64,000 nucleotides of DNA from Marsupella aquatica (Eukaryota > Plantae > Marchantiophyta). Below are positions 4,396-30,594 of this stretch, in pieces; position 1 is the first letter of the stretch, and every line of letters starts with the position of its first letter. Position numbers and translations under genes: made by a program. The stretch lies in NCBI GenBank assembly GCA_973895155.1, contig OZ316899.1:705573-769572 (forward strand), read 5' to 3'. The notes under the pieces are model-generated. The model ran no database searches. It had not been told where the DNA came from and saw only the letters and a program-made list of their open reading frames with translations.

Positions 4396-4419
4396 GAATG
4401 TTCTTTCATTAAAGAGAAA

Positions 4420-5820: not shown

Positions 5821-6014
5821 ACGCTTGGCCCTCAAATTGTTTCACGCTCTTTCACACTCACGTCAGACGATAAGCTCTTTCATGCTCGTCTTGAACTATA
5901 AAAGGACCTCGGACCTCGGACCTTGGACCTTGGATCATTTGTGTTTTCTATTTGTTTTTGCTCAACTCGTCGGTCCTTGACATTGCCGTGGAGGAGTTTG
6001 CACGTGCAAAGGGA

Positions 6015-6691
6015 ATGACGACTTCTTTGGCAGAAAATGACGTCGGATTACTTGCTCTGGCTGCATTGAGGAAGCTCAAAGGTAATTCTGACCTACATTT
6101 ATCGGTTTTCTATGGATTGTGCTAAACTTGAGTCTGCTCTACACGAGAGTCGTGTAGAATGGGTCTCTTTCATCGACCCATAGTCTCTATTTGAGAGCCA
6201 TTATGTCAGAATTTAGAATTTCTTGTTTAGTTCTACGCGAGTCTCGCATAGAACCGATTCTCCAATCTTGGAAGATAATGGATTTCTACGCGACTGTCGT
6301 GTAGAAACTCATGTTTTCTACGTGACTGTCGTGTAGAATCCTCGTTCGGAGATAGTACCATATGGAATCAAAACATTGTTCATGTGACTTTGTTCGTTTA
6401 ACTTTTCTAGAGGAAGGCACTCATCGCAAGGACGATTTTGAGAAGATTGAGGGATTGTTACAAAAAAGTATTTATGCTTTTGATATGAGTTTGATGGAGA
6501 ATTCCATTCTCCAAAAAGCGTTGGAGGAAGAAAAGGAAGCAATAGAATACGAGCGGGAGCAGATGTTTGCAAAGTATCGATGGGCACAGATCCAGCATTG
6601 ACTACTTGCAACGTAGCGGCAAAGTCCATGAAAGCTTCTCTTGAGATGGAGAAGTTTCGAGATCGTCAAGTTCATGACTTGCGACAGGAGC
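6015..6691 (+). pseudogene. Coiled-coil protein gene of the host element, 5' part; interrupted by the CACTA insertion
   Basis: ATG at 6015. A GT-AG intron 6082-6410 joins in frame (LRKLK-EEGTHRK). E/K/Q-rich heptad-like sequence with a frameshift near 6580-6600. Removing 6692-16667 and one TSD restores RQE-LADGRERERQLDTK. Confidence 0.6.
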
Positions 6692-9600: not shown

Positions 9601-10506
9601 CATGACGTGGATCTGTCTTGAACTCACCCCATTGGTCCTCCACAAACCTATTGGCAGGTGAGTCCACCATCATACGCATGGTGGGCGGATCTGAAGTCAT
9701 ATCTGACCGGTTCTTGGAATGCCACACCATATACTCAGCCAACTCCGCACATCGGTACTGGTGCCGTAATCTAGGGATAAGAGGAAAATACCTCATGACC
9801 TTTTGTGCTACTTTTCCAGTGAGCATGTCCTCTCGATACCTCGGTTGGTCACATGTAGGACATGTAGTGGCATCTTTGTGTTCCCCCCTAAAGAGAACAC
9901 AATCATTCACACAAGCATGTATGACTTTGTATTTGAGACCTGTGGATTTCAACACCTTTTTTGCTGCTTTCTAGGAACTAGGCAAGCAGTTCCCTTCTGG
10001 CAAAATCCGACTATGCAAAGTCCTGAAAAGATCATCAAGAAGGAGATTGCTTGCACCATGTCTTTGTTGCAAGTTCAACAATAACATTATTCCTGATAGT
10101 CGAGACAACTGTGACCCCTCAAAAATCCTTGTTTGTGCATGGTCACGAGCTTCCTCCCATTGTCTAGAGTGGGAACCTTGACGTGAAGGAATGTCATGAT
10201 GAGCATGTGTTGTGGTGTCAAATGCATCACCCATACCATGGTCACCATCCTCTACGTCATAGAACTGGTGCATGAGATCATCCATGGCCCTCTCATCCTC
10301 AAGTCTGTCATTGGTGGCATTAGATACTTGCTCAGGAGGGATATCTTCATTCGCTGAAGCTTGAGCCCTACGCCAATCTTCCATGGCCTCGACAAGGTGT
10401 TGCCGCATTGCTCGTGATAATACCCCCACATCTGGTTGAACATACACATTCTAGCAGTTCACAAACATACATAAATATTAGAAGAGACCCACAATGAGAC
10501 AATTGT

Positions 10507-10533
10507 TTTAGGGTTTAGGGTTTAGGGTTTAGG
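10507..10533 (+). repeat. (TTTAGGG)n telomere-like/telobox tract inside a transposase intron
   Basis: Three full units plus TTTAGG. Confidence 0.9.
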
Positions 10534-10663
10534 ATTTATTTATACAAAGAACCAAATTTGTTTGGAAACCATTGTCATGTATTTTATGTTCAACAAAAGA
10601 GGTGGTATATACATGTCTGCCCTACACAGGGTGAGAAAGGAATGCTTTTTTGGGAGCATCCCA

Positions 10664-11125
10664 CTCATAGTCGCAAAACAACTCCTCGCCAGCCCTAATG
10701 GTTGTAATGGCTACAGTCATGACATGGTCATCCATGTGTTTTACATAATAAGGCTCTCTAGGTGGACCAAATATTTGTATCCACTCAACATTAGGCCTAA
10801 GTCCTCTCCCTCTCCCACGAGTACTATTGATGTACCTGGCTATGTTGTCGGAGCGAACAGGGTCCCCATCAATCATCCAAGAATGCCAAGGCCTCCGCAT
10901 GACCTCATCCGGATCAGAATCCATTTGCAATGCATAGACACCCCAAGATGGGTGTTGGCGCAATAGAATGTTCCAACTTTTTGAAGTGTATACGGGACCA
11001 ATATATGGAAATAGGTGCTCCCCATCATAACCTCGGGGCCATGGCTTTGTAGGGACCAAAATGTCCTCCAAGGCAAATACGCCAAATCCTATGTCAGGAC
11101 CAAGGGAGGATGTCTTCACTATCCA
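10664..11125 (-). CDS. SET-domain (lysine methyltransferase fold) segment within ORF 10622-11536
   Basis: SSLGPDIGFGVFA (GxG motif I), YIGPVY, IDG, ARYINS (RFINHS-like), PNV, IRAGEELFCDY (GEELxxDY with the catalytic Tyr), all in canonical order. Confidence 0.88.
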
Positions 11126-12858
11126 TTGGTGACCCCATATGTGGATAGGAGTGTCAATGGTTAGGCCAGGGGGTATTTTGAATCTCTCAGATGAGAAATC
11201 CTTCAAGATTGTCAATGCCTTCCCAGTGACATATGAAAGCCCCAACCTCCCTTCCACTTCCACATAGTCCTCTCCTGGCGGTACTCTATGAGTATGGTGC
11301 AGAACTTGGTCCTCGGTCTCATGCACACCCAAGGGTTCATAACGACGCCGTTGTCTTTGGGAACGTGCTCGGGTGCGACCAACCCTAGATGGAACTGGTA
11401 TAGTCTCCGGATCAACACAAGGGAGGCTACATTGAGGGGGATCTGATGATGCTGCTAACAACTCTCTTGCACCAGCCAAAAGTGTGTTTACCCATAAGTC
11501 ATTAGAGACCAATGGAGGAGAGGTCCTACGAGGCACCTATTCAATCACAAAAAATACCAACAATTAATAAATGTATGGGTGCAATGTTACAACTTGTGCA
11601 TATCAATGTCTCCAAGTGCAATAAATGATGCATACCTGGCGAGCAGAATATCCAAGTAAATCACCCTCATATCGGCCATAGTTTCTCAATGGGCTCAATG
11701 GCTTCCCAGGCTTGACAAACCACCATGCCTTTACATCTAACACACCAGCATGGAATAGGTCCTATAGGAGGAGGACATTGAGTCCGAGGAGGGGGAGGAG
11801 GAACGTCCCCCTCAGAAGATGACGAGGTTGAGTCTGAGTCCGACTCAGAACTCCCAGAACAGGACATCTGCCCATCATCCATACACAATGTCATTATATT
11901 TTAGAATCCGCGCCATTGTGATTTACATATATATGTCTTAAGGCAAAACAAAAAAATGTTTAAATCAATAATACCTTAATGAGACCCGTGCTCTGCAGTG
12001 CCAACTAGGATCTTGGCCTTAGACTATATGCTAAGACAAGTCTGAAATTACTGCACAAGAACACTTCAACTTAATTAGTGTGGAACAAGATCAATAATTA
12101 ACCTCTGTATGACCATAATTATAGTTGGCTAAGGGGCCGACCTATGTCGGGCACCTCCCAACATTCACCTCCAGAACCTTTTAGAGTGGTCCAACCATAC
12201 CTTTCAGACGTGCAGGCTCTCGCTGTGCATGCTGCATTACAAAAAATGGACCCCCAAAAAAGCTCAGCAACCTAACCCTCCGCAAAAACTGAGTGACTTA
12301 ACCCTCTGCAAAAAAGAACTGCAAAATTTGGCATGTCACTGTATGCATAAGGTTAGCTAGCTAGGTGAATCCATATTTTGCCCCCAAAATGTCACAATGT
12401 AAATACCACACAACTCTCAAATATAACTCGCAACATCTATACATATCAACCACCTCCAAACCACACAATGAGAAGGGACCGCGGCTCCAACGGTCCACCC
12501 TATCCCTAAAACCCTGCTTAAACACATAGAACCAACATAGGGTCATCAAACATACAACCAAATTAATTGCCATAGTTATTCTATCGGAAAAGACTTTGGA
12601 CATGAGTAATACAAGGAATTAACAAGAGGGGTCCGATGCTGTAAGAATCGGACATCCACTATGTTTCCGATAATTATAGCATCGCTTGTTCTGATGCTGT
12701 AAGAATCGGATCCATAGTCGGACAAGTTTTAGGTTTCTCGACCAAAGTGCCACTCCTTAGTCGGGCTTTGCATCGAAAGAGCTTCGGGAGATGTTTTCTT
12801 TGGCAAAAGCCGGGGAGGTGCGTGGTCGCAAACTGGAATTGAAGGCCGGGAGGAGCTT

Positions 12859-13996
12859 ATGGCTATGGAGGGGAACAATGGAGGGGCAAGAGGGGCAGGA
12901 GGTGGAGCCGGGGGAGCCGGAGCAGCCGGGGGAGCCGGAAGAGCCGGAGGATCTGCAGGAGATGGAGCCGGGCCATCTCAAAACTTTGGGGACATTATGA
13001 CAGCCATTTTTCAAACGCAAATAGGGCTCTCAATAGAAGTTGCACAACAGGTTGCTGCATTGACACAGGGATTGATTGACTCTTCAAAGGGCACAATTAT
13101 TTCAGAAGCTGAGAAAGCATTCGAGGAAAGGCAGCAGAGGGAGAAAGAAAAGAAGAGGAAGCGAAGGGATGAGAAGCGAAGCATCCCCGCGGAGGCCCTC
13201 TCACCAAGACAGAGAGAGAAAGCCCTGCGTAAAGAAGCACAGGCTGCAGAGAGGAAGAGAGCAGAGGAGGAGAAACAGCAAGCAGAGGAGCGAAGCAAGC
13301 GGCCAAAGCTGTTTTTGAATAGTGGAGGAGCTCCTAGGGCCAAGAGCTATAATCTCTTCAGGAGTCAGCTTGGGCAGGTACTTAGATCCCATTTTGGGGT
13401 GTTAGACTACTGGGGGAAGCAAAATGAACAGGAGAAATTCAGAGTTTGTGAGCAGGTGAAGGAGAGGTTTTCCAATGGATCATTCCTTGATGACAGGTTC
13501 TTGAATCAAAAAATCAGCCTCTCACTTGCAAACTCAAAGAACCATGTCAGGGAGAAGCTCAGGAAATACCTTGGTGAATGCAAGGAAAATGAGGAGGTGA
13601 TCAGGCAGAGGGGGTGCCCAGTTGATCTACCACCAGATGTATGGGCAGCTTGGATTGAGACCAAGCTACAAGTTCGAGCTTGGCAGGCAAGACGGTACTG
13701 GCAGGCCAAATTAGAAGAGCTTGCCACCAAGGCCCAAGCAGGGGAGACTGTTGACACCCGCCATGCTTAGAGCAACCTGCAGCATTGGGAAGCAAGATCA
13801 GTTCAGCTTGGAGACCCTCCCTAGCTCACAAATCATGAAAGCATTGCTTCGAGTTGACAATAGGCCAGTAATCACTCACCGGATGGGGCAGGGTGGGTCG
13901 CAGCGTCTCAAGGCAGAGTTTGTAAGTACTCCCCCTCCTCTGTCCAAGCTCCTCACCTCAATTTTGCCTGATCACCTGAGGCTTGTGTATGCCTAA
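12859..13996 (+). pseudogene. CACTA TnpA-like gene (Transposase_24/Ptta-like), probably continuing in low-complexity exons to ~15875
   Basis: Gly-rich N-terminus, charged coiled coil, helical region (CPVDLPPDVWAAW), then after a frameshift HRMGQGG...LKAEF, typical of Ptta/En-Spm TnpA-type proteins. Divergent from TnpD inside the TIRs. Confidence 0.65.
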
Positions 13997-15049
13997 AGAG
14001 CCCCGACCCAAAGCTAGTCCATTCTTATTGTCGAGGTGAGACCTGCAAGTCAAGCCCGCTCTCGACACTGTATTTTTTCTTTCCTGGGCCGTCTTTCCGA
14101 TACCGGTCCGATTTAGTCGGTATCGGACCCATAATCGGAAGTGTTATCACACCTTTTTTTGAAATTGGGGTCCGATTATGATCCGATAGTATCAGTATCG
14201 GATCAACATTCGGACAATGTGTCCAATATTTTAGCACGAGGGGTCCGATACTTGGGTAATCGGATAATTTGAATTTTTATCGGTAATCCTTGGTAGATTT
14301 GTTAGTAGGATCCAAAGGCCATTGTACATGTATTTGGGGGTGTGAGGATGTGGGACTACTTGGGGTGTGATAGGGAGGGACTAATGGGGGACAATTTGAT
14401 GTTGGGGCCATTTTGTGTGGGGTGTAGGAGCGTGAGCATGGGCGGCCAATCTTACCAGACGAGAGGGAGTTGGCTAAGAAGCACGGACCGCGAGCTCTCA
14501 AGATTCACATGGAGGAGGAGTTGGGTTTGGTATGGACAATCCTTTGAATGCAATGTCTTAATTGGTTGATGAAAATTTTGTGGTAAGATGGAGCATACAC
14601 TAATTGGATTGCTAGTTGGATATATGTAGGGATCAGAGGAGGAGGGGTTGGAGGGTGAGGACTCGGAGGAGGGCTCAAGGGCGGACGATTCAGATGCAGA
14701 GTCATTGGGCCCAGAGGAGGCAATTGTGGCTGCACCCACATCTCGCCGGTCTGGAGCAGTTAGGGACCGTGTTAGTGGTCCTCGCCACTCGACTTGACGG
14801 GGTGAGGATCATGGTGTTCCAGCGTCACAAAGTAGGGCCGGCAAAGGTGGTGCTAGTCGGGCCCCTAGCGCACACCAGTCAAGAGCCATAGGGGTTGGTT
14901 CTAGTGGCCGACGCCAATCAGGGGTTGCTGGTAGAGCTGACACTCAGGGCCCGCGACATGTTGTTGCACAACATGCCGTTGGTGGGTCTCGCCGATTAGA
15001 GCCCCGCGGGGAAGGGTGTTCTAGCGGCTCTCAGTAGTTAGGCGTAGTT

Positions 15050-15600
15050 GGGAGTGGCTCTGGAGGCTCTGGCCACTCTGGCCACACTGGGGGTGGCCAG
15101 GTTGGAGGGAGTGCAGCCGACGGTGGAGGGTCTTGGCACTCTGGCCGCACTGGGGGCGGCCAGTCTGGAGGGAGTGCAGGCGGTGGTGGTGCAGTCTCTC
15201 ACCATGGAGGCAGCACTGGGAGTGGTCGACATGCCCTTGGCCAGTCTGGAGGGAGTGCAAGCGGTGGTGGTGGAGTCTCTCACCATGGAGGCAGCACTAG
15301 GGGTGGTTGACATGCCCCTGGCCAGTACGGAGGGAGTGCAGGTAGTGGTGGTGGTGTCTCTCAACATGCGGGCAGCACTGGGGGTGGTCGACATGCCCCT
15401 GGCCAGTCTGGAGGGAGTGCAGGCAGTGGTGGCGGTGTCTCTCAGCATGCAGGCAGCATTGGGGGTGGTGGACATGCCTCTGGCACGTCTGGAGGGAGTG
15501 GAGGCGGTGGTGGTGGGGTCTCTCACCACTCAGGTCCTCCAGCGGCTAGCCATGGTGCCCCTAGCCAGTCAGGAGGGAGTGGTGGTGGTGGTGGTGAGTC
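15050..15600 (+). repeat. GC-rich minisatellite, ~81-bp unit x ~4.5 plus shorter related units
   Basis: GGCAGCA(C/T)T...GACATGCC recurs every ~81 bp. The Gly/Ser/His-rich frame reads HGGSTGSGRHALGQSGGSASGGGGVSH. Confidence 0.85.
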
Positions 15601-16133
15601 ACGACGTTCTACTGCCAATGGGACTAGTGGGGGGGGGTCCTGTAGCTTCCTTTCATACTTGCCGAGGTAGCGAAGAGGGTGTGCCCTCTCATGGCTCAGG
15701 GGCTTCCCATGGTGGTGGTGGTGGGGTTGGTCCACTTCCTCATGTTGCCTCTACACTTGGGACAGACGACCTGGACCAAGCCAATATGGACCAGACCACA
15801 TTCACCGAGGCTTCTCCACCCCCACCTCCACGGACTTGTTCCAAAAAGAGGAAGGGACGACATGCTCCATTTTGAGCTGGTAGCAAGTCAGATAGTTGAC
15901 CAACATGTGTAGAGTAGAGGCCTAGTGTATTAGGGCAAAAAGTGTAGACCATATGGGGCAGGCTGCTATTTCTTATTTGATCCGAGTGGATCACACTTGT
16001 ACATATTGGGGTCTATATGTATATATTCATTTTAGGGGCTTGAGTACCCTTTTTGGCCATGCATGGGTTCTAATTAGATCTAGTTGCATGGTTGTTTCAA
16101 TAAGCTCCAAAATGCCTCCAAAACACCCCTACA

Positions 16134-16177
16134 CCTAACCCTCACCCTCACCCTAACCCTAACCCTAACCCCCTAAA
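16134..16177 (-). repeat. Degenerate (TTAGGG)n-type tract near the right CACTA end
   Basis: Plus strand reads CCTAAC CCTCAC CCTCAC CCTAAC CCTAAC CCTAAC CCCCTAAA. Confidence 0.8.
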
Positions 16178-16667
16178 TATGCTAATAAGCGTGGCATCCC
16201 CCCTTCCCAAAGAACTCTTTCCGATGCCATTCCGATACTTAAATCATCCCACTCCATCCAACTAAAACCACGCCCTTCCGATGCACTTTGTATTGGACTT
16301 TCCCATTCCAGAACATTCGGATCTTCCAAATCTTACCGCATCAGAACTTGCAATACTAATAATATCGGATATTCCAAAGTTTCAACCAACGGACACTAAT
16401 CGGACACGAACTAAACAGAACAGGCAAAAAAGTGGTGGTCTGATACTTCCGGCATCGGATAGTAAAATATCCAATATTTTAGATCACGGATGGTCCGATG
16501 AAGGTAATATCGGTGTTTCTGAGAGTTGTCCGATGGTCTATATCCGATGTGCAGAAAATGGCATGTATCGATATTGTGGTAATCGGAAGTTCCAAAAATC
16601 TGGTCGCAAGTTGTCGAAGGGTTCCAATACTTTCATTGTCGGAAAAGGGCGATAAAATGTACTAGTG

Positions 16668-16783: not shown

Positions 16784-18968
16784 GGTTCTCTTATGTTTCT
16801 AGCGGATCGGATTGTTTTCTTAAATCTGGACAATGTTTGACTCCGAATCATGATGAGCTCAAATGGCTCATAAGACTATCTCCAAAGTTCTGATAGTCAT
16901 TTTTTGCGGGACCGTTTACACGCCAAAGAGGCCATTTTGTAAAGGATGTTTTCACATCATTTTGTTTATAATGAATCAATAGTTTGTCGGCTCACTTTAT
17001 TTTCTACGCGAGTGTCGTGCAGATGTTTGACATATTTCTCCTTGTCTTCTAGGAGTTCGCTCTGTTTATTTCCGTTTTGACAGGCTTCGGATTGAAACTC
17101 CAACGGTCGCAAAACTTGAGAATATTTTGGCGACTGTGAATTCATGGTCTTTTGAATTGCAACCACTCAAAGGTAACTACCGTTTGATTGTGAGGGGAGT
17201 TAAAAAAGAAAATGGACGAAGAAACTTTGTGAGTTTTGGCACTCTCGCAGACTGTACGAGATTTGCATCCCCAAAGGACAACCCATCTCTTCTGCTGACA
17301 TTGGAGTCTGAGAGTTCTTGGAATTTCAAGCAGATGGTTGCTCCAATTCATGGGTTTTGTTCATCACATTGTCTTGAACCTTACAACCAGGACACAAATG
17401 TTGTCTCATGCGGTTTCTTTGATCCTTTGGCGGATAGATGGCTCTCACCTGATCGGGTCTTTACGGCTGATGAAATAATTCTGGGGCTTGGACGGGTCTC
17501 CTATGTCATGAAGCAGTCGGAATATTTTATCTCTCGGACATGAGAGGTGGATCACATAATGCGGATGAAGATCCCAGACGATGACTGGAGGAGAAAGATG
17601 ACTATTTCTTTGAATGTTGTGTTCATGAAACACTTCACTAAGACAAAGGTGGAGGAATGGATTTGAGGGTATCCAGTAATCCAAGACTTGGTACGCCCAA
17701 AGAAGAAAGAAGCTAGTGGAAAAGAGATTGACGATGATGATGGGGAGGGAAAGGACAAGGATGACTTGTCTGCCTCTAGAGAGAGCAAGTCCCATGAAAT
17801 GATATCAGTCTATGAGTCAGAAAATGAGGATGACGGAGAGGAGGGAAGTGTCCAAGAAGAGAGCAAGAAGACTTTTCAGAATTGGGCGGGGTCAGAGAAT
17901 GAGTCATAATCAACAAGTTTAGAAGGTGGAGTTGAACCAACCAACGATGATGTTGAGAGTGGGGAAATTCAACAAAATGAGGTCATCCCCCCAGCAAAGC
18001 CTCCAACAGAGAAGCGATACGCAAAGACTTCAAAGGGAGTTTTGCCCAGGAAGGGGAAAGCTAGTGTCGTGTCAGAGTCATCCACACCTAGTGGGAAGAA
18101 AAAAGCAGTGGACAAAAAATCACCATCAGGGAAACTAGGCCGGAAGAAGGTTGATTTTGAGAAAACAAAAGAAGAAGCTAAACTACCTCGGAAGAGAGTG
18201 AGAGTCGTTGATCAAGCAGATGAGCCGCCTACGGTGAAAATAGGCCGCAAGAAGGTTCAACGGGAAGAACAAAAAGAAGACAAGAAACCATCTCAAAAGA
18301 GAGTTCTTGTTTCTGACTAGCGCAAAGTTGTGCCTCAAGTGAAAGGTGGAAAAAACGTATCTCCGATTGATAAACAAGAAGAGGCAACGTCTTCTCGAAA
18401 GATAATTCAAGTTGTCAAGGAAGTGCAAGGAATTGAGGACAGAATACGAAAATCAAGCAAAGCAAAGAAAGTCGCTTCACCAGCAAAACCTGAGGAGGAG
18501 AAACCGTCTCAAAAGTCTCGGGTTGGACAGAAATCTGCGTCGGTCAGGAAGAAAGTTGAAAAGGTCAAATCGGAGATCAGGACGCTGAACCGAAAGGGAG
18601 TCGTAAAAGATCCTTCACCAAAGGGAAAGAAAAAAGCAAAACTTGATGTTGACTCAGTAGTTGTGGAATCAAGGGCAAAGCCTCCTAAGCGAAGGGGAAC
18701 GACCATAGAGTTGGCTGAAATTGTTGTGAAAACTCCCATGGTCAGAGCCGTGGAGAAGAAGGCCCCAAACGTTGAGAAGAAGGTTGTCATCACCTCTCAA
18801 GTTGTCGTTCGCAAGCCCAAGAAAGCAAAGAAAAATCAGGAAGCTGTGGATATTGATGAGAACCCTAGTTCCGCGAAGCTAGTTGTCGATCGTGCTCGTC
18901 TGGAGACTGCAGAAAAAACATTGGAGTTGAATAAGTCTTGGTATTGTTTCGGGATATCCAAAAAAAAT

Positions 18969-19400
18969 TCTGTCCCGGTTGAAAACATCCATCCCCCTCC
19001 TGCAAAGATGAATGAGAGACTCCTCAATGAGGAGCATGTCAACCATCTTGCGCAACTGATGACGACAAATGCAGGGCAAGAACCTTTACCTGCAAATTTG
19101 GTTCCTTACAACATGATCGACGGAGTACCAAGTTTAATTGACCTTGCGGGAAAGGATATTGACACCAAGAAGCTTGCGGAATTCAAGTTCTTTGCCATCA
19201 ATGGTCAACATTCCACAATGGCCGCCAAGAAAATTATCCGAAGTTCAAAGACCCAACCATCTCTCATGCAAACAGCCAATTTGCTCAAATATTGTCGAGC
19301 GTGAATTCTCAAAGGGTCAACTCTGGTGAAAGTTCTTGTGGAAATTTCACACGCGAACAACCTTCAGGCGGAGGCACATCGGTTTTCATCTCCATTTATT
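18969..19400 (+). CDS. ParB/Srx-like domain
   Basis: VPVENI...ERLLNEEHVNHLAQLM...FFAINGQHSTMAAK matches the ParB pattern (R-x-L...V..L...M; hhhDGxHR..A). GQH is at 19203-19211; the usual Arg is Ser. Confidence 0.7.
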
Positions 19401-20249
19401 GACCAAGTGAAACATGCAAGAATGCAATACAATGATATGGGGCGACCAGCTCGTCCACTTCCATCGGGTCGGAAATCTCCAGAATTTCAGGTAGGTTCTC
19501 CATGAGAGTTGTGAACAAAATTCAGACACTTTGTCCTTCTCTCCTTTCTATGCGAGGGTCGTGTAGAGCCTTTCCAATATTTTGGGATTCAAAACTTTGA
19601 GCTGGCTAACTTTGAGTTGTTTGGTCTTTCCTCCCAGGAGTATGAAACACTTGCAAAAGTTATGTTAAAGGTGAATAGTATCAGCGAGTACAATTGGATT
19701 TTGTTTGCTCCCGAGAAGCTCTACTCTTTATGGAGAGAGGTTTGCAATAATTGGCTCAAGGGTAATCTTTTGGATTCAACCGGACAAATGACTGGAAAAT
19801 CGAAAGAAGCAAAACAGTTGACAGGGACAACATTCCGGGTTTTTGAGGGTGCCGTAGAATCCGACATCTTGGAAATCCTCCACAAAGTGAATTTGGGGGA
19901 GGCGGTTTTGATGAAAAAGAAACATGCTTTGACTGATCTTCCCGCCATGTCAGAATTGGCAAGAAAAGCAAAGTATACTGACAAACTTAAGGGGGCAACA
20001 CTTCGATTCTATCGGGAGAAGTACGAAGGGGTTTTCTCGCAAGGATCAACTTGGGGTGATGTAGTTCAGCAATATAATTTCACTGATGAGGAATTGGATC
20101 GTTGTTGTGCAATGGTGGACATTGGATATTTCAAGAGCCTTGTGAAGGTGTCATTAAAAGTAGAGATGCTAGAGCCACTGAAAAATAGGTTGAGAAATAT
20201 TCACCAAAAGAGGTTTGGCGGCCATCTCCGTGCAAGGATGGATCCTTAC

Positions 20250-20970
20250 CGAGTTTTCTATACTGGAAATCTGCTCGCGTCTGCTAATCCTCCTTTTGAT
20301 TTGGCTAGCTGCAAGGAGTCAATATTGGCATCTCTAGCGATTGTTGATTTGACCCATACTGGAAAACCGGTTTGGACGCAGTCTGAAATCTTGAACTTCT
20401 TGAAGATCGTCGTGAATATCCCAACAAATGATCTGGTAACAGTTGTTTTTTTGTTTGTCTTGGTATTATTCTTGCAAGAATAATTGAAGCTATTCGAGAT
20501 CTCCCGGAGAACTATAATGCGCACCTTGAATATGGTTCGTTCATGAGGAGTTAATTGGTTAATGCTCCTTTGCAACACATGAGAGGCGATGCGGACATGG
20601 TTCTTTTCCTTGGCGTCTCCCAAGATCGGGTTCCTGATTGGGAAAAGCATTTCAAGGATTTTACCGGTCACTTTGTGTTGGAGGAGTCCGACCTCGAGGA
20701 GACAATCAAGCCAAGTCGAGAGGATTATTCCGATATTTTGAAGGAAGATATGCAGGAGAAAAAAAGGGACACATTGATCTCACGACTTGAAGGCCTTGTT
20801 CCTTTCAAATTGACGACTGGACGGCCATTCAATTGAATATTAAGCCCAGTTGCATCCTGCAGAGTTGTATTCATGCATTTTCTTCGAGGGAGGAAATTGT
20901 CCTGGATTTTTTCACAGGAGGGCAAGTACTGAAGAATGCATTGATGCTTGAGCGTGAGTTTTTTTCATTC
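20250..20970 (+). CDS. Beta-class N6-adenine/N4-cytosine DNA methyltransferase-like domain (frameshifted)
   Basis: KPSCILQSCIHAFSSREEIVLDFFTGGQVLKNALMLEREF (20842-20970) parallels the KP..L...I...S..GD.VLDPF.GSG....A..LGR.F C-terminal block of N6_N4_Mtase. Upstream candidates for motif IV are SLAIVDLTH (20331-20357) and NPPF (20286-20297). Confidence 0.7.
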
Positions 20971-21902
20971 TGCTCTGACCGTGAGGATGTCTCTGACCTC
21001 ACGGCTTATGCAGAGAATCTTAAATTGTTAGTTCCGGTTGCACAATTTGCCAAATCATTGTGGAAACCTCTTGGCCTTGAAGGGAGTTCGACTCAGAACT
21101 CCAATGCTAGTGGAGCAAAAGAGGGCCAGCATTATCAGATTGCCGGTACAGTTTTACATTACGCCGAGGTGGAAGCGGAGGAAAAGTTTCTAAGTTCCAT
21201 TGGGGAGATGAGAATTAGTCCATCAGTCGTTCCAATTGCAAGTCGCGAAGGATTTCCTCTTCTAATGGCTGAAGGAGGTTATGGTTTGGTAGATAATTCT
21301 GAAAACTTACAGGCAGGCACGGGGTTGATTGCGTTCAACAAAACTCTGGAAGATGTTGTGGATGATGTCTCCCTACACACGTATCGTGTAGATCCTCAAA
21401 ATTTGTTTGACCCTCCAGGGTTAGAGTGCAACAGAGGTGTTGAGCAATCTCTTCTGGTTGATGCTTCAGTTCTTCGAAGTGGCCCAGTTTTTGATGATTG
21501 TGAGGCAAAAACTACACTTGAGGATGTCGAGAAGGGGGTGGTGGATTGTGGACCCTTAAAAGAGATTGTTGTGGAGGAGGTTGGGATTGTGGAAAAAGAT
21601 CACACTCCGATTGAATTTCAATGCGATGACAATGTTGACTCTCGTAGCGCTGAAGTAACAGGAGAGAATGATAACTCATTTTCTCTCACAGTGAATCTTC
21701 CTGAGGTGTCAGAGAGGCGAGTCAATCGTGCGGAGGCAACCAATGAGGCAGGTGCCAATTTCCTCTCTCTTGTCTCAAGTCATAAAGTTCTAAACATAAA
21801 CAAATGTCCTCTCCCGTCTCCGGATCCAATGGATAACAAAACAAGGATTGACAATTGCCTCAGTGATCCTATTGGATCAGGATCCGGTTCTAGTACAGGA
21901 CT

Positions 21903-22551
21903 AATGGGTGCCTAATAACTCATGGACAGATGAGGTGCCTGAGTCCTAGAAATTGGATAAGTTCCGATATTCTAAATGCCTACTTAAGTCTCATAGTGGA
22001 GAGGAATCAACATTTCCGACAAGGAGCTTCTGAAGTGCCATGTGTTTGACACTTGGTTCTATACTACACTGACGTTGAATGGCTACTCTTACCAATCCGT
22101 GGAGGCTTGGACTTCACGACTGAAATATTTCTTAATTGATTGTCATCAAATATTTTTCCCCATTCACGAAGGTGGCAATCATTGGGCGTTAGTTGTGATT
22201 GACATGGAACACAAGTATTTAGAATATCTTGATTCTTTGCATAACAATAGGCCAGAGGTTCTTGAAAACTTAGCCAGATATGTTGAGGATGAAATTCAAA
22301 GCAGAAGTCACAAGCAAGTCTTAGCTACTCTATGGCCAAAACATAGTCCCAAGGACATCCCAAGACAAACTGATTACTATAATTGTGGTGTGTTCGTTAT
22401 GAAGTTTGCGAACTACCGTAGTTTGGACCTTCCTTTTGATTTCACAGGAGAGGACATAGATTTGGAGAGGAGAGAAATCGTTTTAAGTCTATTCAGGAAT
22501 AGATTGAGCTTTCCTCTGCAATACAGTGATTTTTGCACGAGACGCGTGTAG
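21903..22551 (+). CDS. Ulp1/SENP-type SUMO protease domain (Peptidase C48)
   Basis: ITHGQMRCLSPRNWISSDILNAYL (frame upstream of the listed ORF), FDTWFY, FFPIH..NHWALVVID, YLDSL, RQTDYYNCGVF. His/Asp/Cys triad and oxyanion Gln are present. Confidence 0.93.
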
Positions 22552-22652
22552 AGGGTGACAGACGGGGTATTTTATTTCAAGGACTGACTTGACTTCAAAT
22601 GGTCTTTGGTCAAGACTGTTCCAATGACTAACCATCCGGATTCGATATTTTT

Positions 22653-23387
22653 ATGTTTGCAGAGTTTGTTCCCAAACTCCACTTAGAGATCAAGCGAAAG
22701 CTCTTGATTTTTGACCTTAATAAGGTTTGTTTCAATTTTGTAAAGAGTAAAAGCTCCAGACCATTTTGGAGGCTCACATCTGTGAGGGGCATTCACTGGG
22801 GAAGACAAGGTGGGAACACATTTATGTATGTGGAGCGTCCAGGACTTCACAAATTTTTACAAGTGATTTTCACGTATTACGATGTCGTGATTTGGACTTG
22901 CGCGGGAAGGCCGAGAACAAATGAAATGATGGATCTTGTTTTCAACGATGCTGAACAAAAGTAGTTCAAGTTTGTATTCACCCAAGAAGAAACGTTTGAC
23001 ACTGGCTTTTTGAGGTCAAATATTACGGATGGGAAGGCAAACATACTTCTCAAGGAAATCCAAATTGTTTGGGATCATTTTGGCAATAGATATGGTCCGA
23101 CAAATATTGTTCTCATCGATGACTCTCCTCTGAAGTGTTTTGCGAATCCAAATGTTAACATGTTGTTTCTAGTTCCATTTGTTCACAACATGGGAGGCGA
23201 CACTTTTCTGATGGAGATATTGCTTCCACTTCTTCAAAGAATGCACAATGCTTTTGATGTAAGACACTTTTTGAATGTTAACTACCCAAAATGGTCCGCC
23301 TACAACAAGGGTGAAGCCCAAAGGAGGCATGGTGATATCTTTGCACACTCAAGCCTGGGGGCACCGCGTTGTTGGCATCGTCGATAA
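22653..23387 (+). pseudogene. FCP1/NIF-like HAD-fold phosphatase gene with one in-frame stop (22962-22964)
   Basis: KLLIFDLNKV, ERPGLHKFL, YDVVIWT, LLKEI..VW, NIVLIDDSPLKCFANP; ORFs 22653-22964 and 23010-23387 share a frame. Motif I is DLN rather than DxD. Confidence 0.85.
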
Positions 23388-23869
23388 TTTCACTGTCCTT
23401 GATCACACGGCAGACGAGATTTCCTGGGAAGTGAAGCATACCGTGCAAAGTTTGCCACCGGTGCAGGATATGAGTGACCATGACATCAATTCAATTGCTA
23501 AAGGTCTACTGGAGATGGTTATTCCAGCCCATATTTGCAAAATAAGCGGCAATTTGTTTGGGAAGTCCTAAAAACTAGGGACCTTACTTCTAAGTTTAAA
23601 AACTTGTATCCTAAAGACGCTTGCAACCGAGATAGAAAGGTTGATAAGTCAGGAAGTAGACTTACTTGCTCAAATATGTTTTGTAGCAACACACATTCAA
23701 TGATCGTTATTTAAAAATTTGGAGACTTGTAACATTGAGGGGAGGCCTATTACAAGTAAACAATTGTTACGGACTTCTGTATGGTTCCCGTTAGTGGGTG
23801 ACAATGAAAATGTGACATTACTCATGTGACTATTCTCCACCAAATTTGTACGCCAAAAATGTATTTTAC

Positions 23870-24032
23870 ATGGATTTGGAAATTTCAACTGGTGTTTAGG
23901 AAACTTGAAAGAGTGTTCTAGAAATTCCAGTTCCAAGTTTTGGAAACTTCATTTAAGGTTGTTGGATAATGTATTTATTAATTTGGAAATTTCACCAAGC
24001 CACTTTGGAAAAAAGAATTTCCAGAATTAGTG
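23870..24032. repeat. Candidate right terminus of the host element: (TTT)GGAAA/TTTCC subterminal repeats ending in TAGTG
   Basis: About six short repeats in both orientations and TAGTG (CACTA on the minus strand) at 24028-24032. The matching left end would lie outside the window. Confidence 0.4.
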
Positions 24033-24039
24033 AAATCAC

Positions 24040-25512
24040 TGATAAAACTTGACTACCTTAGTACTTAGCTCCGGCGGTGCTGACTCTGACACCAAGCTCC
24101 CGTGTGGTCCAGGCCCAAATGGCCAACCGGGGATGACTTAGCATAGGGAGACTTGTGGGCAATTATGGGGCGTGGCACTGGCAAAGGCAAGGCACTGAGT
24201 TGATGACACACACTAAGAACTTAGACTAGCTGAGAGCTGGTTGGGTCAAGGGCAAAGGGCCAGGCTCAAGGTTGACCATCCGGACCCCCAGACGGACTTT
24301 GAGTTTTGAGGGCTTGAGTGAGAGCACCTCTTGGGCCCAATGCCAATGGAATTGACTCCATGGACAACGGACGCTTGGGGCACAAGTTATGGCTTGATCT
24401 GGGTTTGGCCAATCAGGGGTCCCGGGCGATGATGGGATCTGAGGGCTTAGGCATGAGCACTAGGTCGGCCCAATCACAACAGGCTAAGGCACTCTGCTTA
24501 TAGATGCCTAATTAGAAAACTATGGGCATTGCTAGTTGGTGGCATGCCCAGACATGCAAGTTGGGGTCCAGGTGGGGGGACCAAAGTTGGTCCGGGGTTG
24601 AAAGGTCTTCAGAAGCATATAATTATGGGGGGAGTGGTGTCTCCCTGGGGGCTAAGGGTGAGACAAAGGTGTGGGCCGGGGTGGTCGCGACACTAAGGGA
24701 AAATGGCAAACGGAAACGGCGATAACTTCCCAATGGGAAGTCCGTTGGAGGACTTCTTGGGTGCGTTGGAAAGATCTCAAGGAAGGATACATCCTCTTGA
24801 GCTCATCTGGGTCTGGGGGTGCCATATGTTCTTGGGGTTTGCGGGTGTTATCTCGCTGGCTTGCCAAACCCTACCAAAATAGCAGCCAAGTTGCATTCAG
24901 TATCACAAGGGAGATTGTGTTGGGGAGGCAAGGTCAAATAGGCATGGAGGATGAGTTCCAAGGCACTTGGCCCCTAGAACATGAGTGGGGCGAGAACCCG
25001 AGTTGGTTGTTGGGGTCGGGGTCATTCTGGTCCCGGCGTGTTGGGACAAACTTTAGGACAAGCTACGCTAATTGGGCCATGAGCATGTCCTGGGGGCAGG
25101 GCGGTCAGTTGGTGAGGGATAGGTACAAGGGGAAACCCAGGCCGCACCCAAGGAAGGAGTTGTTCTAGACAAACAATGGGTGTTGGTTTTGGTTCTGGCT
25201 TATGACATCTGGAGGACCTATCATTGACCTACTTAACAATGTCTATTGAGCTTGAGTTAGGATGCTAGACTTGGGAGACCTTGATCCCGAGGGGTTACTT
25301 ATTGAGACGCTTGGTTGCTTGTGCAGACAGTGAGGACAGTTGAGTAGTGGTCGTGTTGGAGAGCAAGTGCGGCTTCATATGGGAGGGGCCGCAGGTGGTG
25401 CAAGGGGCACCGGGTTAATTGCTCAAGGTATTCCGTGGAGGCATTTGGGCACCAGGGACACTTAGGCATGGGTGTTGGGATTGGTGAGGGCACTAGGTGG
25501 CAAGGTCCACCA
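24040..25512 (+). repeat. Old ~1.47-kb LTR-like repeat followed by a degenerate tRNA-Met PBS (CGGTATCAAAGC, 25517-25528)
   Basis: Colinear with 27119-28607; starts TG, ends GGTCCACCA. Confidence 0.65.
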
Positions 25513-26029
25513 CTTGCGGTATCAAAGCAATTGCTGGCATAGACACCGGGTTGGAGTTGTGCTAGGTCAGCCAAAAATCCTAATGGAATTTTGTAGGGAC
25601 TTAGTGCTTTAACGTGCTCGGCAGGTCAATTATGGGCATTGGAGACATGGTTAAGAACACTCAATCAAAGAGTGGCAAGAAAGCTCTTCCTACCAAGGGA
25701 AGAGCACAAGTTCAAGAAAAACAAAAGGAAGATGGGTCAACTTCCCTAGACAAACGCTACAAGCAAGATGAGGAGGACATGGCTGCCAAACCGTTGATCG
25801 CCGCAGCAACTACGTCAAGCGCAGAGTGTTGTCAACTTAAAGGGAAAGAGGCGACCAAACCTTCAAAGGACAAGTCAAGCCAGGACAACACCAACTTGGA
25901 TAAAAGCAACAACGGTTCAAAGACTAGATTGAAGGGAGAGGGTCAGGATCAGAAGAGGGACTGATCCCAACCTTAAGAGGTTTGGATGCGGAATCAGAGT
26001 ATGATGTCAAGCCAAACGTCATCGTGGAC

Positions 26030-26850
26030 AATTTGACATTGGGAGGACCTATCGCTGACCTACTTACCAATGTCTGTTGAGCTTGAGTTAGGATGCTAGA
26101 CTTGGGGAGATCTAGATCTTGAAGGGTTACTTATCGAGATGCTTGGTTGCTTGTGCAAACTGTGAGGACTGTTGAGTAGCGATCATATGGGAGGGGCCGT
26201 GGGTGGTGCAAGGGGCACTAGGTTGCTTGCTTGAGGTATTTTGTGAGAGCGTTTGGACACCAAGGGCATTTAGGCGTGGGTGTTGGGATTAGTGAGGGCG
26301 CGGAGTGGCAAGGTCCACCACTTGTGGTATCAGAGCGATTGTCGGTAGACACCAGGTCGGGGTTGTGCTAGGTCATAATCCAAAAATCTTAACAGATTTT
26401 TGTGGGGACTTAGTGCTTCAACGTACCCGACGGGTCGTCTGCGGACAGATTTGGTTGCTGGTGACATGGCAGAGAACACTCGTTCAAAGAGTGCCAAGCA
26501 GGCTCCCCCCCACCAAGGGGAGAGCCCAAGTTCAAGAAGAACAGAAAGAGGACGGGTTGACTTCCCTACACAAATGTTACAAGCAGGACAATGAGGATGT
26601 GGCGGCCAAACCGTCAAGTGCAGAACGCCGTTGACTTAAAGGGAAGGAGGTTGCCGATCCTCCAGAGGACGAGCTAGGCGATGACGGCTCCGACTCAGAT
26701 GGAAGCGACAACTGTTCAGAGGCTGAATCAGAGGAAGAGGGTCAAGACCCAAAAGAGGAATTGATCCCAACCTTAAGGGGGTTGGATGCGGAACCAGAGG
26801 ATGATGTCAAGTCGGACATCATCGTGGATAATTTGACCAAACAAAACCAG
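26030..26850 (+). repeat. Tandem duplicate of the LTR 3' part, a perfect tRNA-iMet PBS (TGGTATCAGAGC, 26325-26336) and the leader
   Basis: Colinear with ~25205-26035. Confidence 0.7.
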
Positions 26851-27118
26851 GGCGATGCAAGTGATGCCTCAGCCCTGGGAGGTCATGGTGCTCGCAAGTC
26901 GCGGGAGGTGTCACCAAATCCACAAAGGAACCTAAGGACAGGCGGCCCACAAAGGAAACACGGTTGGAGGACCATCCTCATACAACCCACAAGGGCCCAG
27001 CCACTGATGACGGTTTGGGTCCGTTGACTGACCAACAACTCCTTTATGAGCAGTTGGAACACAACAGGGGGGCCCAGATTAAGTACTTACTTAGTCTGGG
27101 TAGTCAGAGTGCAACAGT

Positions 27119-28607
27119 TGTGGAACTTGACTACCTTAACACTTAGCTCCGGCATCGCTGACTTCGACGCCGAGCTCCCTTATGGTCCAGGCCTGGATAG
27201 GCCATCTGGGGAGGACTTAGCATGGGGAGACTTGTGGGCAATGAGACGTGGCACTAGCGAGGCAAGGGGCCAAGCTGGGGACACACACTAAGGACTTGGA
27301 CTAGCCTATGGCTGGTCGGGTCAAGGGAAAATGGGCCAGGCTCAAGGATGGCCGTCCGGACCGTTGGATGGACTTTGAGTTTTGAGGGCTTGGGAGTGAG
27401 CTCCTCTTGGGCCCAAGGCCAATGGAGTTGACGCCATTGGCAGCGGATGCTTGGGGCGCAAGTTGTGGCCCAATCCGGGATGGGCCGGTCGGGGACCCTG
27501 AGCGGCGATCAGACCTAAGGGCCTAGGCATGAGCACTGGGTCGGCCTGGTCACAACGGGCTAAGGCACTCCGCTTGCGGATGCCTATCAAGAAAGTTATG
27601 GGCGTTGCCAGTTGGTGGCGCACCCATTATGCGCGATGGGATCTGGGTTGGGGGCCAAATGTTTAGGGACCAAAGCTGGTCCGGGGGTGGCAGGTCTCCA
27701 GAAGCATATATGAGGGGAGTGGTGTCTCCCTGGTGGCTAAGGCCGAGCCGAAGTCGTGAGCCACGGCGGTCGCGACACTAAGGGAAACTGCCAAACCGAA
27801 ATGGCGATATCTTCCCAACGGGAAGTCCGTTGGAGGACTTCTTGAGTGCGTTGGCAAGCTCTTGAGGAGGGCTACGCCCTCCTGAGCTCAGATGGGTCCA
27901 GGAGTGCCATGGGTTTTCGTGGTTTGCGGGTGTTAGCTCGCCCGCTTGCCAAATCCTGCCGAACAGCAGCCAAGCCACGTTCAGCCTCCCAAGGGAGCTT
28001 GCGTTGGGGAGGCAAGGCCAAGTAGGTATGGAGGCTGAGTCCCAAGGGCGCTCGGTCCCTAGACCATCACTGGGGCGAACCGCGAGCGATTGTTAGAGTC
28101 GGGGCCATTCTGGTCCCGGCGTGTTGAGACAAGCTTGGGACAAGCTTTAGGACAAGCTACGCTATTTGGGCCATGAGCATGTTCTGAGGTCAGGGCGGTC
28201 AGTTGGTGATGGATAGGTACGAGGGGGAACCCAGGCCGCGCCCAAGGAAGGAGCTGTTCTGGACAAACGGTGGGTGTGGGTTCTGGTTCCAGCTTATGGC
28301 ATCGGGAGGACCTATCACTGACCTATTTACCAACGTCTGTTGAACTTGAGTTAGGATGCTAGACTTGGCGAGTTCTAGATCCTAAAGGGTTACTTACCGA
28401 GGTTTTTGGTTGCTTGTGCAGATAGGGAGGACCGTTGAGTAGCGGTCGTGTTAGAGAGCAAGTGCGGCTTTGTATGGGAGGGGCCGTTGGTGGTGCAAGG
28501 GGCACTAGGTTACTTGCTCGAGGTATTCCGTGGAGGCGTTCGGGCACCAAGGGCACTTAGGCGTGAGTGCTGGGATTGGTGAGGGCGCTAGGTGGCAAGG
28601 TCCACCA
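27119..28607 (+). repeat. Second ~1.49-kb LTR-like repeat
   Basis: Homologous to 24040-25512; ends GGTCCACCA but is not followed by a PBS. Confidence 0.65.
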
Positions 28608-30128
28608 CTGCGACGCATCCCAAGGGGGAAATGGTAGTTGGACAGAGTATGTTCCAAGTGAACCAACTACCGACTCCTCCAACTTACGATGGGGCCTATG
28701 AACAAAATGGACAAAATATCCTAAGTTGGCTCTCCACGATGGAGATCCATCTGCAAGCGTGTGTTGAGCGATCCACTTGGGCTACCGCAGCCGCTCCTTA
28801 CCTAAAGGACTCTTCCTTGCCGCTAACTTGGGAAAACCTGGTTGAGGGTCTCCGTGCTCATGTCACCACTAAGTACCCAGAGCGGGACGCTCATAAATGC
28901 GTAACAAAGATGAGTTTTAGGGGTGATATCCAAAAGTTCATCACTTATTACCAGAACCAGTTGGCGTGTATCCCGAAAGGACAAGAGACCCTACATACAC
29001 AGCTTCACAACTTTATAATGAAGCTCCTGCAGTTGCATAGGGAATGAGATTTAGTTCGTTGGCCATATCTTTACCCTAGAGGGGATTACGCCTAGTTAGG
29101 ACAAGCTTAAGGAGATCAAAGAGTGGGAGCGCCCGTCCAATGTAAGGCAAGTTAGAGCCTTCTTAGGATTTATGGGGTTCTATTGGAGATACATGAAAGA
29201 CTATGCAAGGATTGCGAGGCCCCTAAACGCGCTAACGTTGAAAAACAAAGTGTTTGTGTGGACACAAGATTGCGAGTTAGCATTCCTAGAACTTAAGAGG
29301 TTAATGATAACGCCGCCGGTTCTAAAGTTACCTGAGATGGGAAAGCCGTTCGAAATTTGGATAGACGCAAGTGATTATGCCATTGGCGCCTGTCTTCACC
29401 AAGATGGGCGTCCTGTGGCCTTTGAGTCATGTAAGTTGGAAAATCACTGGATCACGCCGGAAAGGGAAATGTATGCTGTGATCTATGCGTTGAAGAAGTG
29501 GGAGATTTACCTTAGGAACGGTCCCAAAGTGGTAATCCACACAGATAGCTCGCCAGCCGGGTACTTCAGTTCTAAGCCAAGGCTGAACCCCAAGGAAATG
29601 CGTTGGCAGATGTTCTTGGCGGATTTTGATTTCAAAGTCCGCCACGTTCCAGGGAAGACAAATACGGCAGTGGACGCGTTATTGCGTAAGGACCAACATC
29701 GGGTCAATGGGATCACGATGCTCAAATCCGAGTGGCCAAAGGTTCTGGCCGTAGCGTATGGGGATGACAGGTTAGCTAAGGAATGGCAAAGCAATGGGGG
29801 TAGCCAAGGCAAGGTAAGGCATGTATTGTTGGGGTTGGATAAGATGCATAATGTCCAGTTATGGCAATACAAGCAGAGGCGTGTGTACATACCGGAGTCT
29901 CTAAGGTTAGAGGTTCTGCTAAAGTACCACGACTCGCCCTGGGGAGGGCATGGAGGACAAGCCGCTATGTATCGCAGCATGTCGCGAGATGTGTATTGAC
30001 CGGACATGAAGCAATCGGTCCTTCAACACGTGCAAAGTTGTTACTCGTGCCAAAGAACCAAACGGTCTATAGGGTAAAAGGAGGACTACTACAACCCTTA
30101 CCAGTAGTTGCGGCTCCATGGGAGTCTA
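28608..30128 (+). pseudogene. Ty3/Gypsy chromovirus remnant, 5' part: gag fragment, RT end, RNase H, integrase Zn-finger
   Basis: PTPPTYDG gag; VRAFLG..GFY, DASDYAIGA, EMYAVIYALKKW; HDSPWGGHGG...CYSCQ; ends PWES at the insertion point. Confidence 0.88.
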
Positions 30129-30486
30129 TGTGACGCCGCTGGTACGGCGGTTAATGAGTGATTCAGTCTAACTGCGCTCGGCACGCGCGTTAGGTGGGTC
30201 TTAGGCCGCTATTATTAGCATAACGACAGTATTTAGGTAATCATTAGGGGTAGGACATCATTAGGCAATAAGGGGGACTTCAAGTTCGGGCTGGCGGCGG
30301 GTCGCTATTCGCACACCCGGGTTACGAGCGTGGAGGGGCCCCTCCCTCGGGTCCGTATAACGAACTTAAGGAAGCGGCCACTGACGCACGCTGACTCAGA
30401 CCGGCGGAGTGGCCGGTACACCACAAGCGTGAGTGGTTCAACCTATGGGCGTCGAGGAGACGTCGGGGATCGACAAGCCCTCAAAG

Positions 30487-30493
30487 TATAAAA
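30487..30493 (+). promoter_or_regulatory. TATA box in the LTR, ~100 bp upstream of the LTR ORF
   Basis: TATAAAA followed by GGGG. Present at the same position in the 3' LTR; copy 2 has GTATAAAAAGGG. Confidence 0.6.
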
Positions 30494-30594
30494 GGGGAGC
30501 CAACCCTTTGTAGTGCACCAGTCCATCAGTCCGCGCGCCAGCTTCGACCCCAGCTCTCTCGTTCTCTCTAGGTCGCCACTACTATCTCCTCTGA

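Follow-up and report, generated by a model that had tools for sequence, protein, structure and literature searches.

Within a 64,000-nucleotide stretch of the liverwort Marsupella aquatica (assembly GCA_973895155.1, contig OZ316899.1, positions 705,573 to 769,572 of the forward strand; hereafter the window), the plus strand between 17127 and 22548 holds the remains of a gene of approximately 1,746 codons, legible after repair of six in-frame stops and four frameshifts and removal of one intron. Its intact form, of about 1,750 residues, encodes in order a lysine-rich low-complexity N-terminus, a ParB/Srx fold followed by ParB/KorB-like helices, a methylase-like domain, an acidic linker and an Ulp1/SENP protease; the window copy itself is pseudogenised and dead. 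A decayed NIF-like gene lies directly 3', and a 21 bp palindrome recurs in and around the gene, including an array on the far side of an inserted CACTA element.

Reading frame, intron and other copies

Frame 0 extends across 17127-20444, interrupted by stops at 17541, 17664, 17907, 18318 and 19302. It is followed by frame 2 at 20447-20830 (one stop, 20552), and then by three stop-free pieces in frame 1 (20833-21867), frame 0 (21897-22010) and frame 1 again (22015-22548). The sole intron, at 19491-19637 on the plus strand, is 147 nt long, in phase 0 and of the GT..AG type (borders CAG/GTAGGT and CCCAG/GAG). The spliced junction, ...PEFQ/EYETLAK..., agrees with relatives free of the insertion (...SKFQDWQVLAK in the protein P0012), and a gap or intron occupies the homologous position in the Calypogeia fissa locus L005 and in loci L006 and L009. 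The break at 20483-20555 was also considered as an intron and rejected: it consists of a frameshift and a point stop, and homology runs through it.

Contigs assembled from four public sequencing runs were compared with window 17600-23599. Each run contained 155-414 related contigs at 90-100% identity, with word depth in the hundreds to thousands; the gene is part of a high-copy repeat. Most of these contigs differ from the window by an additional T at 20445, an additional C at 20831 and one nucleotide fewer at 22013. The last part of the linker, 21868-21896, is an indel zone: in three runs, loose ends of 30 nt at 21867/21868, set against the window sequence, give a net difference of -2 nt across 21868-21897, the window copy having two extra bases. 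Together the four indels of the other copies carry the frame from 0 to 2, 1, 0 and 1, and all four frameshifts are therefore private lesions of the window copy. The net two-base deletion leads frame 1 into frame 0, the frame of the N-terminal piece of Ulp1, without a stop. The linker frame is open to 21867 and Ulp1 homology begins by approximately 21930; there is no room for a promoter between them. An initial annotation made from the letters of this stretch had already merged the listed open reading frames (ORFs) into one gene, at about 1,780 codons; the frame analysis, the phase-0 intron and the indels of the other copies bear it out at a slightly shorter length. The motifs it quoted (FAINGQHS, NPPF, IVDLTH, IKP...IVLDFFTGG...LEREF and the Ulp1 H/D/Q/C set) were all found in place.

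The N-terminal region (17127-18860, plus strand) belongs to the gene by continuity of frame 0 and contains the first four of the stops listed above. It is mostly low-complexity sequence rich in K, V, E and S (18%, 12%, 11% and 10%, respectively, over 17688-18860) and has no Pfam match; its segment 17142-17231 is weakly similar to L005 7778-7867.

The ParB-like domain and helical region

The window copy being broken, AlphaFold models were built from P0057, a relative sharing about 30% identity with it. P0057 is a 1,009 aa protein encoded as one ORF on an ENA contig and covers window 18888-21048, from which it follows that the ParB-like, helical and methylase-like parts form one protein in relatives.

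The ParB/Srx-fold domain and the start of a helical, helix-turn-helix (HTH)-like region occupy 18861-19490 on the plus strand (core approximately 18980-19400, motif FAINGQHS, interrupted by the stop at 19302) and align to P0057 residues 46-259. The helical region continues beyond the intron, at 19638-20240 (plus strand), and is partly alignable to the DNA-binding helices of ParB and KorB. The model of P0057 residues 50-480 has a mean confidence (pLDDT, predicted local distance difference test) of 87, and its helical region is all-helical. Foldseek places Noc, ParB, KorB and Srx at the top, with the first 21 hits drawn from the same group (E from 2e-3, probability 1.0). VIA aligns 93 residues to residues 37-130 of Myxococcus xanthus ParB with a Z score of 9.1 and a root-mean-square deviation (rmsd) of 2.3 A, and its top 30 PDB entries are all ParB, Noc, KorB, PadC, SerK, SbnI or Srx. 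The alignments to KorB (193 residues) and Noc (160 residues) extend into the helices, up to model residue 327, and the shape neighbours in the ESM Atlas are ParB_N+HTH proteins aligned over 230-270 residues.

Sequence searches for ParB found nothing. Pfam gave no match, whether for the window ORF (E limit 1) or for full-length P0057 (E limit 0.1), NCBIfam gave none for the ParB-like segments at E up to 10, and a profile search of PDB sequences returned no ParB chain; for this reason the ParB fold is shown by structure only. On that footing, the ParB-like region of the initial annotation holds as a structural match, though not as a profile match.

The position of the GERRxR box reads (S/N)G(Q/A)HS, in which G, H and S are invariant and no arginine occurs; the window has GQHS. 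In this it is akin to the DGQHR/GCHR boxes seen in DndB and Srx. ParB-type CTP binding is doubtful, because the GERR box reads GQHS.

By language-model features the ParB-like part lies nearest to clusters of DUF3723 (0.96), a conserved cargo of fungal Starship elements. By shape it also aligns to a cluster that contains DUF3723, with template modelling scores of 0.41/0.44 over 249 residues. Both are accessory genes of mobile elements; DUF3723 proteins are without methylase or Ulp1 and give no match at the level of sequence. This link is a lead only.

The methylase-like domain

A beta-class amino-methyltransferase-like domain spans 20241-21099 on the plus strand, across the frameshifts at 20445 and 20831 and the stop at 20552. 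The order of its motifs is permuted, with the motif IV strand (IVDLTH) first and the X-I-II block (IKP...IVLDFFTGGQVLK...LEREFFSF) last. The model of P0057 residues 440-770, from a 25-row alignment, has a pLDDT of 84. Its best Foldseek hit is CcrM (1.6e-8), followed by RsrI, PvuII, MboIIA, HpyAVI, BceJIV and the rotifer N4CMT, and the top 27 are all beta-class. VIA likewise finds CcrM (Z 17.5 over 222 residues), with a top 20 made up entirely of beta-class or Type III Mod enzymes and MT-A70 only at about 11. At the sequence level, the family profile detects M.RsrI in the PDB at E 6.7e-6 over motifs X-I-II. The fold and permuted order proposed by the initial annotation are thus upheld by three kinds of comparison. 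The Pfam family N6_N4_Mtase (PF01555) scores 17.3 bits for the window and 18.5-23.5 for relatives, below its cutoff of 26.7 and over profile positions of approximately 92-210 only; a precomputed PF01555 hit exists for one short relative (P0068) and one ORF of L006.

The catalytic motif is another matter. In none of the approximately 20 aligned members does a (D/S/N)PP(Y/F) motif IV follow the beta-4 strand, and neither prolines nor an aromatic residue stand at the PP(Y/F) positions. In P0057, FARR stands after the strand CAIVD, in the place of DPPY; the window has DLTH and Calypogeia DFTR. Most members show D-F-x-R or a variant and the three most divergent DTTS, DATT and DSAN, the aspartate being invariant. 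Motif I, DFF(S/T)GG, has a glycine loop one residue shorter than the DFFAGSG of M.RsrI, while the acidic residue after strand 2 (motif II; FSD, YVD, CSD) is retained in most members. The literal NPPF of the window was considered as the true motif IV and rejected: it occurs in the window copy only, has no counterpart in relatives and is a chance match. To judge from these alignments, the methylase-like domain is probably a pseudo-enzyme. The caveat of the initial annotation that its methyltransferase may be catalytically dead agrees with the family-wide absence of PP(Y/F), with DLTH, not NPPF, at the motif IV position, and its proposal that the protein lays a mark of N4-methylcytosine (4mC) or N6-methyladenine (6mA) becomes unlikely.

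The linker, Ulp1 and the NIF-like partner gene

The acidic linker (21100-21896, plus strand), probably disordered, is in open frame 1 to 21867 and collinear with the ...DEAGA... linker of relatives. The Ulp1/SENP (peptidase C48) catalytic domain follows at 21897-22551 (plus strand), with the frameshift at 22013 where other copies have one base fewer. It matches Pfam PF02902 at E 4.1e-25 (89.3 bits against a cutoff of 20.7) and SENP2 at E 5e-26, in an alignment that places NHW, YLDS, PRQ and NCG at the catalytic H, D, Q and C; this upholds the intact triad of the initial annotation. By these motifs it is the only domain of the protein likely to be an ordinary enzyme. That ParB-like, methylase-like and Ulp1 parts share one gene, as the initial annotation had it, is supported for the first two by the single ORF of P0057 and for the third by other copies, which read from the linker straight into Ulp1.

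A separate partner gene, decayed in the window, lies at 22653-23714 on the plus strand and encodes a homologue of NIF/FCP1-like phosphatases of the HAD class (Pfam NIF, E 1e-8 and 9e-7 in the window, 2.6e-19 in L001). A NIF-like gene invariably stands directly 3' of the ParB-methylase gene, as it does in six other loci: L001 (3572-4510), L002 (3339-4154), L005 (13402-14067), L006 (4927-5640), L008 (3988-4629) and L009 (4047-5132). All seven sequences that cover motif I have D-x-N-x (LDCNG, FDLNK, LDMNH; FDLNK in the window) where DxDx(T/V) is expected, and because D-x-N replaces DxDxT the general acid is missing. A C-terminal motif, ...CNRD.RVD..R..LTCSN..., is conserved.

Lineage-specific palindromes

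Eight sites of the 21 bp palindrome TCTAYRCGAGNNTCGYRTAGA form an array at 4434-6337, four of them inside a 169 bp tandem repeat (4434-5206). Further sites lie just 5' of the gene (17003-17023), in its intron (19547-19567), at 21372 and at the end of Ulp1 (22532). In total there are 23 strand-matches at 12 places, against 0.09 expected, and the rest of the 64 kb contains no site. A distinct version, CCTCGCGAnnnTCGCGAGG, occurs in Calypogeia at 14 sites (0.11 expected), all within the unit at L005 6210-14706; the homologous intron contains one of them, and another lies just beyond the end of Ulp1 homology. In L003 four CATCGCGATGATCGCGATG sites occupy the same intron (180-403). In L006 three TCACGCGCCAAGCGCGTGA sites lie upstream (14-126) and three in the intron (1640-1752), each triplet spaced at 47 nt, and L008 has one related site upstream (22-40). 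The palindromes of L003, L006 and L008 are 19 bp long with 8-nt arms and a 3-nt spacer. Across the five loci they follow a shared plan of 19-21 bp, arms of 8-9 nt, a 3-nt spacer, a CG-rich core and flanks that differ by lineage. Their positions are conserved: 5' of the gene, within the intron that follows the ParB exon, or at both places.

These palindromes are the strongest indirect evidence that the ParB-like module may read its own element. The earlier proposal that the protein loads on its own DNA gains from their lineage-specific enrichment in and around the gene; binding to them is itself predicted only.

Relatives and distribution

When the helical piece was used to search 1.84 billion representative proteins, 54 relatives were returned, a number so small that the family is rare. 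Named ones come only from two liverworts, Calypogeia fissa and Riccia sorocarpa. Calypogeia L005 has the order of the window (ParB 9165-9773, helical region 9974-10735, methylase-like domain 10728-11379, Ulp1 12742-13211, then the NIF gene) at approximately 38% protein identity, and Riccia has the ParB and methylase-like domain only. Relatives outside two liverwort genomes, those of the window and of Calypogeia, are without Ulp1 and have instead a conserved tail (HYVW..GP.KG...EYGSFV). From this distribution, Ulp1 is an old, lineage-restricted addition that replaced the tail. Between L001 and L008, which are 97% identical, the ratio of nonsynonymous to synonymous change is 0.51; with 56 changes behind it, this value carries little information.

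A third round of homologue searching, based on a broader alignment, added no relatives and missed the AlphaFold DB proteins described below, a locus search of viral contigs found no relative, and a locus search of metagenomes found one 1.8-kb contig. In AlphaFold DB, both models match consecutive segments of each of three proteins, A0A388LX61, A0A388MEC1 and A7RT40, at E 1e-7 to 1e-11. The models also matched numerous A0A388-series paralogues, some of them labelled as DNA methylase N-4/N-6 domain proteins. These unstudied proteins, which from their accession series we take to be from Chara braunii and Nematostella, have the same ParB, helical and methylase architecture, with no Ulp1 reported. 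The shared architecture indicates that the family extends well beyond liverworts.

The CACTA insertion, unit borders and neighbouring DNA

A CACTA (En/Spm) element occupies 6692-16667 on the minus strand. It has perfect 14 bp inverted ends (CACTAGTACATTTT), flanking triplets AGC and AGT that match at two of three positions, coding domains on the minus strand at 7.2-11.5 kb (Transposase_21, DUF4218, DUF4216 and SET) and an 81-nt tandem repeat at 15158-15596. Another copy of the ParB gene has an insertion at 18851 that shows the end sequence of this element. This element was considered as the carrier of the gene and rejected, its ends lying at 6692 and 16667 and the gene starting at about 17127. 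It is a separate insertion between the palindrome array and the gene, and its removal joins 4434-6691, with the eight palindromes, to the gene. The earlier description of the gene as carried by a plant transposon therefore stands as far as the high-copy repeat goes and fails for this CACTA element, whose inverted ends exclude the gene.

No inverted ends of the ParB unit were found between 1-6691 and 22500-31000, nor were terminal inverted repeats, target-site duplications or a recognisable transposase found for it. On the right, G+C steps from 0.40 to 0.52 at approximately 24.0 kb, which is probably the edge of the unit. On the left, beyond the palindrome array, a conserved minus-strand gene (97-1245) runs off the start of the window. 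Its counterpart in L005 (1281-1895 and 5906-6118, minus strand) is 31-52% identical in pieces. It belongs to no Pfam family; its language-model neighbours are multi-copy hypothetical proteins of arthropods and oomycetes, with a faint link to DUF7869. This gene is a candidate for the transposase of the ParB unit.

Several other features were observed in this repeat-rich window, in which Ty3-type long terminal repeat retrotransposons are present. A 2.97-kb segment (1429-4395) is bounded by 147 bp direct repeats that are 98.6% identical. Its core (2163-2676) shares 66% DNA identity over 543 nt, in opposite orientation, with L005 4526-5035, which is itself inside a segment (1903-5675) bounded by 184 bp direct repeats and placed differently relative to the neighbouring gene. 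Such identity in non-coding DNA is odd beside a protein identity of approximately 38%. On the other side of the gene there are a pair of direct repeats at 24046-24499 and 27124-27575 (80% identical) and fragments of a Ty3-type capsid, RNase H and integrase at 28592-29999.

Discussion

Fusions of ParB_N with N6_N4_Mtase (PF02195 and PF01555) in prokaryotes and phages have the same domain order as the liverwort gene and, like it, are found on mobile DNA. One ESM Atlas cluster has exactly this pair; it is a structural neighbour of the best feature match for the methylase-like part. The liverwort gene differs in being eukaryotic, in having an intron, in its lack of a Pfam or NCBIfam ParB match, in GQHS for GERR and in the loss of motif IV; it also adds a helical insert of about 200 residues, long disordered regions, a C-terminal Ulp1 and a NIF partner gene. 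Among plant transposons, Mutator (VANDAL, KI-MULE) and CACTA elements carry the C48 protease Ulp1, and VANC of VANDAL21 is an anti-silencing protein that recognises short, lineage-specific motifs amplified in its own element. Unlike the Ulp1 of VANDAL and CACTA elements, that of the liverworts is fused to ParB-like and methylase-like modules, has no VANC homology alongside it and lies outside the only element with defined ends.

The beta-class fold is shared in eukaryotes by the rotifer N4CMT (structural hit, Z 15.8) and MpDN4MT1 of Marchantia. These enzymes keep TSPPY/SPPY and make 4mC (bioRxiv 10.1101/2021.02.12.428880; PMC8885841); unlike the present gene they lack ParB and Ulp1 and do not occur as high-copy repeats. 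A parallel in catalytic state is offered by the inactive methylase domain of DIRS1 (PMC4738411) and by METTL14. Both keep, in a mobile element or a complex, a methyltransferase fold with a disrupted catalytic motif and a proposed role in binding instead of catalysis, as here, although their clades are PCIF1-like and MT-A70 rather than beta-class N6_N4 and their partners differ. A survey of eukaryotic adenine methylases (PMC4738411) does not list the present architecture, and no description of it was found in the literature on ParB with methyltransferase, CACTA, Ulp1 or Marchantia. It is an undescribed variant of the ParB-methylase theme.

We favour, with moderate confidence, a self-addressed anti-silencing or transposition-accessory protein composed of a ParB tether, a non-catalytic methylase-like module and an active Ulp1. 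The ParB-HTH module would tether the protein to the palindromes of its own element, each lineage having co-evolved its own site. The methylase-like domain would serve as a non-catalytic module that binds DNA, a base or S-adenosylmethionine (SAM), or that dimerises, and Ulp1 would act at the element itself by stripping SUMO from silencing factors or from chromatin, in a logic comparable to that of VANC of VANDAL elements or TnpA of En/Spm. A number of observations count against this account, or limit it. DeSUMOylation cannot be the core function of the family, because most relatives are without Ulp1. The HTH assignment is based on two-domain alignments with a high rmsd (5-12 A), and loss of PP(Y/F) is not proof of lost catalysis, as the invariant aspartate and the X-I-II block would also suit an unusual active enzyme. 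The reading into Ulp1 in other copies comes from the 30-nt loose-end consensus, without a full intact copy, and the sequencing runs found as 'rna' look like DNA assemblies, with the intron retained, repeat-like depth and no 19490/19638 joint. The term 'mobile element' relies on copy number, since neither ends nor a transposase of the unit were found.

A bolder version, which we put forward only tentatively, is that a bacterial partition or anti-restriction cassette was rebuilt as a eukaryotic anti-silencing device. The ParB-HTH, co-evolved with palindromes in the promoter and first intron of its element, would be joined by a dead methylase fold and an acid-less NIF as binding or decoy modules and, in some liverworts, by an active SUMO protease that would relieve SUMO-dependent silencing locally; the targets of the binding or decoy modules would be, for example, flipped bases, SAM or the phosphorylated polymerase tail.

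The protein could instead be a TnpA-like transposition accessory factor acting on arrayed subterminal palindromes, with Ulp1 and NIF as later cargo without joint function. The array lies on one side of the unit and partly in 169 bp tandem repeats, as subterminal repeats would, the conserved minus-strand gene that is maybe a transposase stands beyond it in both the window and Calypogeia, and Ulp1 is missing from most relatives. However, the unit has yielded none of the terminal repeats, target-site duplications or transposase sought, and the palindromes at conserved places within the gene (the intron and the 3' end of Ulp1) suit regulation better than end recognition. We consider this account unlikely; it overlaps our preferred explanation more than it excludes it.

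We hold it improbable that the ParB-methylase-like part, Ulp1 and NIF are three neighbouring genes whose continuity into Ulp1 is accidental in decayed copies. In relatives the ParB-methylase ORF does stop after the conserved tail, with NIF starting at its own ATG 100-270 nt later, and in Calypogeia motif I and Ulp1 stand approximately 1.2 kb apart, with AT-rich DNA of little coding character between them. Set against this are the window frame that stays open almost to the Ulp1 homology, the stop-free join created by the two-base deletion of the other copies, and the lack of promoter room; NIF is already counted as a separate gene.

Least probable is an active DNA amino-methyltransferase, loaded by ParB and writing 6mA or 4mC as a self-mark or anti-silencing mark through a non-canonical motif IV: the high beta-class fold scores, the invariant aspartate, the conserved motif II acid and X-I-II block that align to M.RsrI, the methylase labels of AlphaFold DB relatives of the same architecture and the active 4mC enzymes of this class in Marchantia (bioRxiv 10.1101/2021.02.12.428880) and rotifers (PMC8885841) speak for it, but none of the approximately 20 aligned members has prolines or an aromatic at PP(Y/F) where MpDN4MT1 keeps TSPPY, the glycine loop is short, the Pfam score is below the gathering threshold and confined to the C-terminal half of the model, and DIRS1 provides a precedent for inactive transposon-borne methylase domains (PMC4738411).

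These findings correct a tempting and probably wrong reading of this gene as a transposon-encoded writer of 4mC or 6mA. Phages and plasmids use ParB-methylase fusions as tools, whereas plant transposons have Ulp1 as their best-known 'chromatin' cargo; here one polypeptide joins these two worlds. The fixed NIF partner and the lineage-specific palindromes at conserved positions persist across copies at approximately 30-40% protein identity, and the losses in ParB, methylase and NIF, against an intact Ulp1, point to the activity worth testing first. The window copy is a relic, and the value lies in the family: it offers a concrete system in which to test whether a protein encoded by a eukaryotic element recognises the DNA of that element, with the palindrome variants as natural specificity swaps.

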